A DNA stretch of 63,926 bases, the filler included, from Olpidium bornovanus S191 (Eukaryota > Fungi > Olpidiomycota), in the NCBI GenBank assembly GCA_017911155.1. It is 28 parts of 28 records of this genome, joined end to end, with 100 filler letters (N's around TTAATTAATTAA, not from the genome) between each part and the next. Parts side by side here need not be neighbours in the genome. Positions count along the whole stretch, not along the records: positions 62,799 to 63,926 come from JAEFCI010002713.1; 27 more parts are not named here. One strand, given 5' to 3'. The notes below the pieces were generated by a model. It saw nothing but the letters and a program-made list of their open reading frames with translations, did no database searches and was not told the DNA's origin. The position numbers were made by a program, and so were the translations under genes. Positions 10,101 through 63,926 of the stretch are shown piece by piece (the stretch's first letter is position 1; every line of letters begins with the position of its first letter).

Positions 10101-11772
10101 TCGTAAACTGACAGACGCCTCGAAAATCAGAGGCAGGTTCGGCTGTGCGCAGAGGGAAGGGGATCTTGGGGTGGGAAGGCCCCGACACGGCGGCGCCAGC
10201 GGCGTACATATAAAAGAGACCGTCGACACTGTTGGCTGCTCTCGAGACGGAGTCGGGCGCGCTTCAAGGCCACCACCCGGTAACGGCGGTCGCGGGCGCG
10301 CCCTGCCTGTACGGCGCGGACATCGCGTGCGTCGACGAGTTCATCCGACGGCATCACACCGCCGGAAGCGCTGCAGCCCAGGCGCTGCACGGCGTCGGCA
10401 ACGCGCGGCACTCCCCGCCGCGCCCGTCGGCCCCGCCGCGCCGCCAACGTCGGACCGCAAAACGGGTGACATCCGGCCATGCAGCATCGCGGACGCTCAC
10501 GTCGCCGACATTCATCAGACAAGAAGTAGATTGTCGGCCGGCGCCAACGCCGGGCGCCGGGCGATGCGCGCGCCCGTCGTGAGACGCATCGTCGCGGGGC
10601 GCACGCGCCGCCGCGACGGGATCTACAACGTCTTGCGCTTGGTTTGATCCCGAAGGCGCGGGCGGGCGGGGCTCGCAGTGTCGTGAAGGAAAAGGGGATG
10701 CCGACCGCCGGGGGTTCGAAGTTCCAAAAACTTCGGAGCGGAAATCCAAAATTCACGGACAGGATTCAAACGTGCAGGAATGATAGCTAGGGTAGATATT
10801 TTTTGCCCCCCCCCCTTTTCTTTACGCGTGCCGACCCCGCGCGTCGCAAGCCCCCCCCCCCCCCCCCAAAAAAAAAAAAAAAACCCCCCAGCGAAAGCGC
10901 GCCGGTTGTCCGCCTCGCCGTTCCCCAGCGCGCCACTCCGCCTAAAGAAATGTATTGAACTTCTATGACATGTTGCAGGAAAGGAGAANNNNNNNNNNNN
11001 NNNNNNNNNNNNNNNNNNNNNNNNNNNNNNNNTTAATTAATTAANNNNNNNNNNNNNNNNNNNNNNNNNNNNNNNNNNNNNNNNNNNNCGTCGCGGCCAA
11101 CCGGGCAATTGTTCTGACGACGGAGAAACTACACCGCAGGAGGAAATCCGCAGAGGGCGGCCACAAGGTTTCTTGAACGTATAATGCGCAACCTCGTTTC
11201 GATGGCGGGGTGTTTCCCGCTGGGCCGGAAGTCCCTTTCGACGAAACTCTCGTTCTCCTGACAACGACCCGTGCGCGTTCAGAAAAATTGTTTGTTTCGG
11301 CAACGGTTTCAGGACATGCTGCGCAAGAAAGGTGGTGCGCTGTGTAGAACACCCCGCTTCCGTTCCGTAAGATTCCGCTCGCCGCAGATTTGAACCTCAG
11401 CAGCGCACTGTTGCTTTCGCCCGGACCGCTCCGCATGGCGGTCCTCTGCGAATGAAAGGGCAGCCTATATCGCATCACCTGCCGTATCACGCAGTCCGTA
11501 TCCTCCCGTATTTCGGTGTATCATAACTTTTCCCACGCCGCTTGGCGGGCAGGAGCGTGGCGGGCCGTTCCACGTTGCCCTGTCGAAATTTGTGCCGACA
11601 GTCTTTCTCCGCGTTCCATGAAACATTCTTTCACGTGCCGCCCCAACAAGGAAAAAAAAAAAAAAAAACCAAAAACCAAAAAGAGAAGCCACCGCCCCGC
11701 ACCTGCGGCTGAAACGAGCGGATCTGGTCCTGCGCACCCGCCGAATTTTTGTTATTATGCAAGAGTGGTAGA

Positions 11773-11809
<37 letters not shown>

Positions 11810-13549
11810 GGGGGGGGGGGTGGGGGGGGGGGGGGGGGGGGGGGGAGGGGGAAGGGCGGGCGCTGCCAGGGCGGGTGTTTGCAAGGGCGGCGGGAGGTGG
11901 GGGATTTTTCGTCTTGGGCCCAAACCGGAGGAGGGCGACGGACCGAGAGAGCGGCGCCCCGCCCACGCGTGAACACGCCACTCAAGCAGGCTTCGACGCG
12001 CCTCCCCGCGGCCCCGCCGGGACTCTCTCCCTGAAGCAGCAGGCGGCTGCGCCATGGACGGCCTGCGCTGCTGCCTCGTCCTCCGCCCGCACGCCCCGTG
12101 CCTGCGCCGCGCGCTGCCTCTGCGGCTTCCGCCGCGCACCCAGCAGCTGCCGAAGCCGCAGCAGCAGCAGCAGCAGCCGCACCACCACCACCAGCACCGC
12201 CGCCGGCTTCACCAACGACTCTCCGCCACAGCCGCACGACCACATTTCCCTCCGCCGTTGCGGCCTCCTGCAGCGCGAAGGGGCGTTGATGCCGCTGGGG
12301 CGCCTGCCGGAGCCGGTCCGCCGCCGGCGGCGCGTTCGCTCCTCGGCCGGCCTGCCGGCGGCATCGACGCGTCGGCGTCTGGGCCGTGCTTTCCGCTTAC
12401 CGCGGTCACGCGCCGCGGAACCGCCGTCACGGGGGACCAATGGCACCGGGAAAGGAACCAACCGGACCCCCGCCGGCCCGAAATGCCGCGATTTGGACTG
12501 CCAGCGCGGCGTTTTCTCACTCGTTCTGCTGCCGTGCCGCCGCTACCGCTGCCGCCAGAAGACGAGGAGGCGGAGGCGGAGGCGGTGCTGAGGATGCGGA
12601 AGGGAACGACGAAAGGTGGCGTTCGATCCGTTGACGCCGACGTCGCCTTTAACCGCCCAAACACGGTCTTTTTCCCCCTTTTATTCCCCCCCCTTGGTCG
12701 ATGTCCTCTGACCTGCGTGTTCTTATTGTTCCAGAGGACGTGGAGAAACGGCGAGAAAGTGTGATGTCCGGGTGCGAGGTTTGACCCTTCTCGGTTTTGT
12801 GAGGGAAAACGCAGAGCGGTTCTTCCCCTGGACGACTGACCCGCTTGGGCAATTCCCGCAGTTCTGCACACGTCATCCTCTACGCGATCGGCAGGTTCGT
12901 TTCTGCGGTTCCCACTGCTGAGGCGCCTTTGCCTTACGGGACAAATGCGACATCCAACCAACGGCGCGCCTCCGTGTTTTTGATCTTCCGTCGGTCTGCA
13001 GCAATTTGCTCGTCGCGGCCGCTAAAGCCGCCGCCGCTTACACCACAGGAAGTTCAGCTATTCTTGCAGAGTGAGCTCTGTTCTCATTGTCGCCTGGCGC
13101 CGGGAGAGTTCGTGAAAACGACCCGCGATGCGGGGAAAGCGTTTGGAAATGTTAAAGAATACGGGAGCGTGCCAAAACCGCTTGCAGGGTATTCCACTCG
13201 CTTGCAGACGCGTGCAACGAAGCATTCATTCTTTGGGGAATCCGGGCCTCGAAGAAACCGGCCGACCTCAACCATCCCTATGGGTTTCAAAGAGAGCGGT
13301 ATGCGTGGGCGCTTGGTAAGATGTTCCGAAATAATTTCGGCAGAGGGCCGAAGCAATTTTCCGGTGCCGGGAGTCTGATTTATTTTTGGTCCATAGTTAG
13401 CGGCTGTGGAGTGTTCTTCTTGGGCTGCGGTGTATCGATGTACCATGGCNNNNNNNNNNNNNNNNNNNNNNNNNNNNNNNNNNNNNNNNNNNNTTAATTA
13501 ATTAANNNNNNNNNNNNNNNNNNNNNNNNNNNNNNNNNNNNNNNNNNNN

Positions 13550-62698: not shown

Positions 62699-63209
62699 NN
62701 NNNNNNNNNNNNNNNNNNNNNNNNNNNNNNNNNNNNNNNNNNTTAATTAATTAANNNNNNNNNNNNNNNNNNNNNNNNNNNNNNNNNNNNNNNNNNNNCC
62801 CGCGCCCGCCGACGCCGGGAGCGACACCGCCAGCGGAGAGACCAGCGTGAGCGACGGAGGCGGCGAGCACGGCAAGCACGGCAAGGAGAGAGAGGGAAGA
62901 GGGGAGGCCGACGGGGGACGGGGGGAACCGAGAGAGTTCATAACTTCCAATAGCAAAGCCTATGAATACCAAACAGTGGTGCAGCGGCCTCCAAGAGTGT
63001 TGTACTGCAACGAAAAACCAACAACGTGTGCTGTTCATTTGCGCTCATTTTTGCCTGGCGACCAGCGTCCATCGGCTACCTGGGTGAAGCCGCTGACAAC
63101 AAGTGAAACCAACCGCGCTCTTGCCTCATCCACTCTATTCTTGTAGAAGCAGTACTTTCTTTCCTATTTATCCGCCCATTCCCCCTGAGCCCGTAAGTTC
63201 GGAGTACAC

Positions 63210-63926
63210 TCCGCCGTTAACGGGGCCGGTTCCCACAGTCGACGGCAGGCGGGATTTACAACGATCCGCGGTTCGCATTCGAGACACGGTATCGCGAAAA
63301 ACGTCACGGCAGCAGTGGTCCGCTGCCCCGCTTATGACGAGCACAAACATAGATTTCGACTCCCGAGCTAGCCTCGCTGAAAGGCCGAAGGCCCCACGGA
63401 ACAAAAGAAAAAAGCAAGATTCGCGAACGTTGAAGGAATCAAGGAAAATGATTGAACTTGACAGCGGCCCGCTTCCCGCTCGAAAATAGCGCGAATCTCT
63501 TTCCAAACGTCTGTGTCCAAGCAGTCGATAACGTGCGATCCGATGTTCCTCACCGGATCGTACGATCTGACCAGTTACCTGTAGTACGGCCAGAAGGATA
63601 TCGAGTCGACGTCGATCTCCAGGGTGATCAACTCGGGAGAACGGACCACGAGAGCGAACTGCGTCGTGGTGATAGCGTCCGCGGGCTTTAATCAGCAAGA
63701 CGCCATCATCATGAACAGGGCTTCTGTTTTGCGGGGACTGTTCACGTCAACGAAGGTCAAAAAATACAAGACAACTTTTCACACGGGATCCGACGCGATC
63801 GTGCTCGGAGCCGTGTACGACGACTTGGACAGGGACGAGAACGGGTTTGTCAAACCGTTTCAAACCGTGAGGAAGGGGGACGTGCTGTTCGCGCTCCACA
63901 GTCACGACAGAATAAACCGGGTCCGG
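63210..63926 (+). pseudogene. rpb2: Virus-type DNA-directed RNA polymerase second-largest subunit fragment, disrupted, runs off the window
   Basis: LTAARFPLENSANL[fs at ~63500]FQTSVSKQSI..YL*YGQKDIEST..ANCVVVIASAGFNQQDAIIMNRASVLRGLF..DENGFVKPFQTVRKGDVLF aligns with the Rpb2 region NTYQSAMGKQAM..YYPQKPL..NAIVAI..GYNQEDSVIMN..IDRGLF..DDDGLI..V..EDVII but is far more diverged than any fungal Pol I/II/III subunit. Upstream RRQ..FET..HGIAKNV resembles the fork-loop region. In-frame TAG at ~63582. Confidence 0.85.

Follow-up and report, generated by a model that had tools for sequence, protein, structure and literature searches.

Giant-virus "fossils" and active infections have both been described in zoosporic fungi (PMC13533422), and many fungal genomes carry viral pseudogenes (PMC13348850). 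The described systems that come closest to the locus reported here are these "viral fossils" or GEVEs of the Nucleocytoviricota in fungi and protists (PMC13533422, PMC13348850), the Mycodnaviridae (PMC13533422), and the cytoplasmic killer plasmids of yeasts, which are reported to use a protein-primed PolB and have a reduced transcription apparatus thought to be derived from Nucleocytoviricota (PMC13348850). The window analyzed in this study is the whole stretch of 63,926 nt, and its last piece (62799-63926, 1128 nt) ends with a broken, 5'-truncated fragment of an Rpb2 gene, which occupies the final 456 nt (63471-63926, plus strand). Judging from sequence comparison, this fragment is probably a dead Rpb2/beta remnant of a large DNA virus, which would belong to a distinct clade characterized by an unusually short Rpb2 (about 890-1090 aa). 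Its likeness to the Nucleocytoviricota fossils would lie in being a decayed copy of a hallmark gene of large DNA viruses, and its relatives carry replication and transcription genes of the NCLDV type, with no capsid gene seen. As for the Mycodnaviridae, the only link to the short-Rpb2 clade is the shared host group, the zoosporic fungi. No match between the lineage and a name from the literature was established among egoviruses, mriyaviruses, Mycodnaviridae and killer plasmids.

Translated in the frame that starts at 62799, the piece gives clear Rpb2 sequence towards its 3' end, and the motifs quoted in the initial annotation lie in this same frame. The downstream open stretch alone matched the Pfam family PF00562 (RNA_pol_Rpb2_6) with 42.7 bits and an E-value of 5.4e-11 over profile positions 49-158 of 373, the curated cut-off of this family being 23.4 bits. 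In an intact enzyme, the start of Rpb2 domain 6 is the beginning of the hybrid-binding domain, which lines the active centre and provides an acidic motif near metal B; it is this part of the protein, with the metal-B motif region included, that the fragment encodes. The downstream open stretch was also compared exhaustively with 1.84 billion (1.84e9) representative proteins by phmmer. The best hit, at an E-value well outside what chance would give, was P0001, a protein of 985 aa (56% identity, E 8.6e-32, 125 bits); scores then dropped steeply to P0002 (960 aa) and P0003 (984 aa), each at 44% identity, an E-value of about 2e-18 and 82 bits. The identification of the gene as Rpb2 is thus borne out by the reading frame, the Pfam match and the phmmer search alike.

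The fragment corresponds to residues 557-711 of the 985 residues of P0001 and to positions 550-693 of the 970 positions of a family profile built from 13 relatives. Its 3' end coincides with the edge of the piece, and the remainder of the gene lies beyond that edge. When P0001 was used as the tblastn query, a single alignment in a single frame was obtained (window 63471-63923, 53.5% identity over 155 aa), and blastn against the gene of P0001 on its contig, L001, gave 68.7% identity over 294 nt. The closest known proteins are P0001 and, with it, P0102, P0003 and P0002; over the shared region, P0001 resembles the fragment with 53-56% identity at the amino acid level and 69% at the nucleotide level. 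The two align colinearly and without gaps, at comparable GC content (56% for the piece; 59% and 61% for the nearest kin L001 and L003, respectively).

In principle the fragment could come from a polymerase of the host itself, as a diverged paralogue of Pol I, II, III or plant-type IV/V, or it could be an archaeal Rpo2, and among solved structures its best matches were indeed archaeal Rpo2 (35 bits) and, at about 28-29 bits, Pol IV/V and Pol II (27.8 bits for Pol II), which favors such an origin weakly. With the cellular and archaeal proteins represented by 2waq_B (Sulfolobus Rpo2) and 1i3q_B (yeast Rpb2) it shares the domain 6 fold family and the active-centre motif region; however, these proteins reach only 24-35 bits against the fragment, and the proteins of the short-Rpb2 clade are 100-300 aa shorter. 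No Pol I or Pol III chain among the solved structures appeared at E <= 1. In the phmmer search, the 125 bits and 56% identity to P0001 stand against at most 48 bits for any Rpb2 outside the short-Rpb2 clade, and all cellular Rpb2 proteins had E-values of at least 1e-7. In addition, the clade of P0001 contains none of the cellular sequences sampled, with 97-100% bootstrap support, and P0001 itself is about equidistant from archaeal Rpo2, Pol II, Pol III and Pol I (290-206 bits). A cellular or archaeal origin is therefore considered very improbable, and the earlier proposal that the gene is virus-like rather than a host Pol I, II or III subunit was supported both by the score of P0001 and by the exclusion of cellular Rpb2 from its clade. 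The subunits of ASFV and poxviruses scored only about 13 bits against the fragment.

The source contig of the piece was not recovered from the JGI metagenomes, GTDB genomes or IMG/VR. A peptide-pattern search of IMG/VR revealed no relative, and in the JGI metagenomes only relatives with at most 45% identity were found (at most 37% across the full length of the stretch). No exact 39-mer of the piece was matched in GTDB genomes or IMG/VR, and neither the downstream stretch nor the longest open stretch upstream had a hit in a word-indexed search of proteins, which covered a length range without full-length Rpb2. Neighbour-joining trees of the fragment were computed from the open stretches as they stand, unjoined. 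With 114 columns only, the fragment grouped with P0001 at 67% bootstrap, within a 7-member subgroup at 74% and within a 14-member clade at 54%; in a broader set of 165 sequences, the short fragment grouped at 44% with P0001 and at 65% with a five-member group that includes P0001, P0002, P0093 and P0102. Such moderate values are no surprise given the small number of columns, and we regard the gap in the phmmer scores as the stronger argument. By sequence similarity, the fragment is closest to the short-Rpb2 clade by a clear margin over other Rpb2.

The clade itself was delimited with complete proteins. In a neighbour-joining tree of 165 full-length Rpb2 sequences (1040 columns, 100 bootstraps), 17 sequences formed one clade at 97-100%, without any cellular, archaeal or bacterial Rpb2, and the only giant-virus MAG (GVMAG) sequences inside it are those of L009 and L077. 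The Rpb2 proteins of this clade are 891-1094 aa long, are encoded in all 17 cases by single uninterrupted ORFs, and lack clear Rpb2 domains 1, 2 and 5 according to Pfam. P0001 scored 290 bits against archaeal Rpo2, 265 against Pol II, 247 against Pol III and 206 against Pol I, and is farther from ASFV (147 bits) and vaccinia (124 bits); the Rpb2 proteins of other giant-virus MAGs in IMG/VR show 25-32% identity to it. Features shared within the clade include an Rpb1 that is split into an N part of 610-695 aa and a C part of 331-543 aa, a recurring UDG-TFIIS-Rpb2 neighbourhood, a small PolB, a D5-type helicase, a SNF2/ResIII helicase and a capping enzyme. They were observed on the contigs L001, L002, L003, L007, L009, L077, L115 and L119, whose GC content ranges from 24% to 61%. 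The contigs of the clade form a coherent, unnamed, virus-like group, which contains no named virus and is barely represented in IMG/VR. Clade members occur in the sequencing runs SRR32520636, SRR31514749, ERR6807722, ERR6807726, SRR23867098, SRR15204649, SRR15204654 and SRR15204656.

Unlike the complete P0001 ORF, which lies beside Rpb1 and SNF2 helicase genes, the fragment is truncated, contains a stop codon and has no viral neighbour. The breaks in the copy were mapped by running the family profile on all open stretches that the piece contains across its six frames. Two of them scored and no others, the downstream one with an E-value of 3e-37 and the adjoining upstream one with 1.7e-9. Both are in the same frame and sit on neighbouring positions of the family profile, so the stop between them occupies exactly one profile position; it is the only in-frame stop inside the Rpb2-homologous region. 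No other-frame open stretch among the six frames scored as Rpb2 against Pfam, PDB or the family profile. Taken together, the family-profile and tblastn results indicate that the breaks within the homologous region amount to one in-frame stop, with no supported frameshift. The initial annotation had proposed a frameshift together with an internal TAG, and of these the in-frame stop was recovered while the frameshift was not. By-eye resemblances just upstream of the homologous region, which might have pointed to a frameshift, are not colinear with the relatives. The ORF track misses the gene also because its open stretch continues past the end of the piece, and ORFs of this kind are never listed.

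Homology begins abruptly at about 63471, that is, at the first residues of domain 6 (around residue 557 of 985), so the previously proposed start at 63210 was placed too early, although the gene does continue to the end of the piece. About 55% of the gene is missing upstream of this point. A whole gene would put some 220 more codons on the piece, among which the well conserved domains 3 and 4 would be expected, yet no Rpb2 homology was detected there in any frame at the protein or DNA level (tblastn, family profile and blastn). There is also no in-frame start codon between the preceding stop and the onset of homology, which makes a naturally split gene unlikely. A fork-loop-like segment had been described at about 63189-63368, but it matched neither Pfam nor PDB nor the family profile. 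The argument for a viral polymerase drawn from very short spacing between this segment and the SKQ motif falls with it; the gene is truncated at this place, not compact.

We compared the two open stretches, aligned separately and never joined, with nine intact relatives. Seventeen positions do not vary among the nine, which by definition keep all of them; the fragment retains 13 and has lost the other four, one of them within the active-centre motif GxNQEDA. This loss bears on the reading of GFNQxDA as a viral hallmark. The nine intact relatives carry the invariant motif of the cellular enzymes and the fragment departs from it at one position, so GFNQxDA is a private change of the fragment and not a viral signature. 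An uninterrupted ORF over domains 3, 4, 6 and 7 with an invariant active-centre motif is not present in the fragment. From the in-frame stop, the missing 5' part and the four changes at otherwise invariant sites together, we conclude that the copy is non-functional and cannot make the protein, and in this respect the earlier description of the gene as pseudogenised was upheld.

The 672 nt in front of the fragment (62799-63470; no strand assigned) could be related neither to Rpb2 nor to any other sequence in the searches. They had no match in Pfam, PDB or Rfam, none to 119 related loci by blastn or tblastx, and none to the UDG, TFIIS and Rpb1 genes that neighbour Rpb2 in the relatives. No homologue of the longest upstream open stretch was found, no recognisable host gene is present on the 1128-nt piece, and scans of the piece with Rfam and for inverted repeats, promoters and terminators yielded nothing of note. 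At the very beginning of the piece (62799-62925) lies a GC-rich (71%), purine-rich stretch of low complexity with short tandem repeats of 7 and 9 nt, which looks non-coding. Candidates for the nature of this upstream DNA are host or intergenic sequence, an inserted element and an intron. The abrupt 5' limit of homology could reflect a chimera formed at this point, or an intron that exceeds the roughly 690 nt available upstream.

A pyrimidine-rich run ending in AG is found at the 5' boundary of homology. The fragment could be an exon of an intron-containing gene, either captured by a host or belonging to a nuclear virus with spliceosomal introns, with the upstream 672 nt or more as the intron, and intron-rich large DNA viruses are described (PMC12768974). 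Against this, each of the 17 members of the clade that were examined has its Rpb2 in one unbroken ORF, and invariant positions have been lost. Moreover, the in-frame stop falls inside a stretch that aligns gaplessly to the relatives, and for this reason it cannot be spliced out. We therefore judge the exon to be improbable, and a viral relic remains the preferred explanation.

L001 (JGI metagenome contig Ga0226660_0723153) is 17.6 kb long with 59% GC, gene-dense and intronless. On it, P0001 is flanked by the 695-aa N-terminal part of Rpb1 and a SNF2/ResIII helicase of 965 aa, and genes for UDG and a D5-type primase-helicase are close by. L002 encodes TFIIS, a PolB of roughly 800 aa and a protein that combines LysM, chitin-binding and GH18 domains; L003 carries dUTPase, a D5-type helicase and Rpb1; and L115 carries TFIIS and UDG. 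L007 encodes a capping enzyme with N7-methyltransferase, PolB, UDG, TFIIS, a D5-type helicase, a SNF2 helicase and an Rpb1 split into 657 and 331 aa, and the IMG/VR contigs L009 and L077 contain a split Rpb1, PolB, UDG and a DUF5757 helicase. The Nucleocytoviricota hallmarks on these contigs are therefore PolB, D5-type helicase, Rpb1, Rpb2 and TFIIS, accompanied by SNF2 helicase and capping enzyme. The full contigs of L007 (27.9 kb), L077 (51.7 kb) and Gaertneriomyces JADGJR010000046.1 also encode unannotated proteins of 450-850 aa. Genes for a capsid, a packaging ATPase or VLTF3 did not turn up in the parts of the relatives' contigs that were read, so the Nucleocytoviricota-like assignment is based on replication and transcription genes only.

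Measured against such contigs, the piece has a similar composition to its nearest viral kin. It is also only 1128 nt long, with a single stop and no supported frameshift, and relatives with intact ORFs occur in several samples. These facts would suit a live virus that was sequenced alongside, or else a virus integrated in intact form. The stop would then be an error of sequencing or assembly, or a variant present in a minority, and the DNA further upstream would be an assembly chimera; the single stop could indeed be such an error. However, the relatives are gene-dense and have a neighbour gene within about 150 nt of Rpb2, whereas the fragment is preceded by 672 nt without coding signal or homology. 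Furthermore, the fragment departs from the relatives at four of the 17 invariant positions, including one within the active-centre motif, and an essential gene truncated at the start of domain 6 and devoid of a start codon is incompatible with function. A live or intact virus is accordingly unlikely, and all three alternatives, namely the live virus with artefacts, the exon behind a long intron and the cellular paralogue, are less likely than a viral relic.

With regard to the host of such a relic, the only named members of the short-Rpb2 clade are two chytrid proteins, KAJ3393376.1 from Lobulomyces angularis and KAJ3177359.1 from Gaertneriomyces sp. JEL0708. The neighbour-joining tree of 165 full-length Rpb2 places the pair inside the clade with 100% bootstrap, and their best matches are each other, followed by the P0001-type proteins. 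In Lobulomyces angularis (L118, JADHYX010000069.1), the intact Rpb2 is a lone intronless ORF at 6283-9504 among host-like neighbours, several of which span more than their coding length, implying introns as in host genes. In Gaertneriomyces sp. JEL0708 (L119, JADGJR010000046.1), the intact Rpb2 ORF at 10001-13285 lies in a virus-like block with the C-terminal part of Rpb1, the RNR small subunit, a D5-type helicase and a ResIII helicase. Both chytrid proteins resemble the fragment in their tie to the short-Rpb2 clade and show that the lineage does leave copies in assemblies of zoosporic fungi, but unlike the fragment they are intact (1073-1094 aa), with about 40-47% identity over the first 57-63 residues of the fragment. 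Given these chytrid members of the clade and the viral fossils documented in fungi, an endogenous remnant is a reasonable interpretation, and it is plausible by analogy that the fragment is linked to a host genome. According to this model, the remnant would be an endogenous viral element that a large DNA virus of the short-Rpb2 clade left in the chromosome of its eukaryotic host, and this host may have been a zoosporic fungus or some other microbial eukaryote.

The comparison with the yeast killer plasmids was made by description. The PolB proteins of the relatives are of the PF03104+PF00136 type, in contrast to the protein-primed PolB reported for the plasmids (PMC13348850), and the relatives, unlike the plasmids, encode a stand-alone Rpb2 beside separate Rpb1 genes. 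On the side of likeness, the LysM, chitin-binding and GH18 chitinase domains encoded on L002 recall the chitinase subunit of the killer-plasmid toxin (PMC13348850). The gene in question (L002 9146-11800) encodes a protein of 884 aa, on a contig with 24% GC.

The fragment appears to be an ordinary viral relic, a familiar kind of feature, that comes from an under-described virus lineage. Its value would lie in being a pointer to the well-supported short-Rpb2 clade, and the lineage is the part worth following. The fragment would also be a record, dated by its decay, of contact between the source organism and this virus lineage, and gives reason to search the same assembly for further genes of the lineage. 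More speculatively, and with some doubt on our part, the fragment might mark the host association of an undescribed, deep-branching lineage of large DNA viruses that infect zoosporic fungi or related microbial eukaryotes and repeatedly leave copies in their genomes. Such a lineage would have a minimised transcription apparatus, with an Rpb2 of about 890-1090 aa, an Rpb1 in two genes, and UDG, TFIIS, capping enzyme, SNF2 helicase and a small PolB as neighbours, and it could be near the viral source of the transcription genes of fungal killer plasmids.

Two further observations were made on the piece and on the contig of P0001. An antisense ORF of 176 aa at 63168-63698 (minus strand) straddles the point at which the unrelated upstream DNA gives way to the Rpb2 fragment; Pfam returned no match for this ORF, which probably arises from base composition. 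L001 has no terminal inverted repeats, whose presence would have been a sign of a complete linear genome. It does contain an inverted repeat of 42 nt (2258-2299 and 12866-12907, 79% complementary), the arms of which are 10.6 kb apart and enclose the block of D5-type helicase, UDG, Rpb1, Rpb2 and SNF2 helicase.
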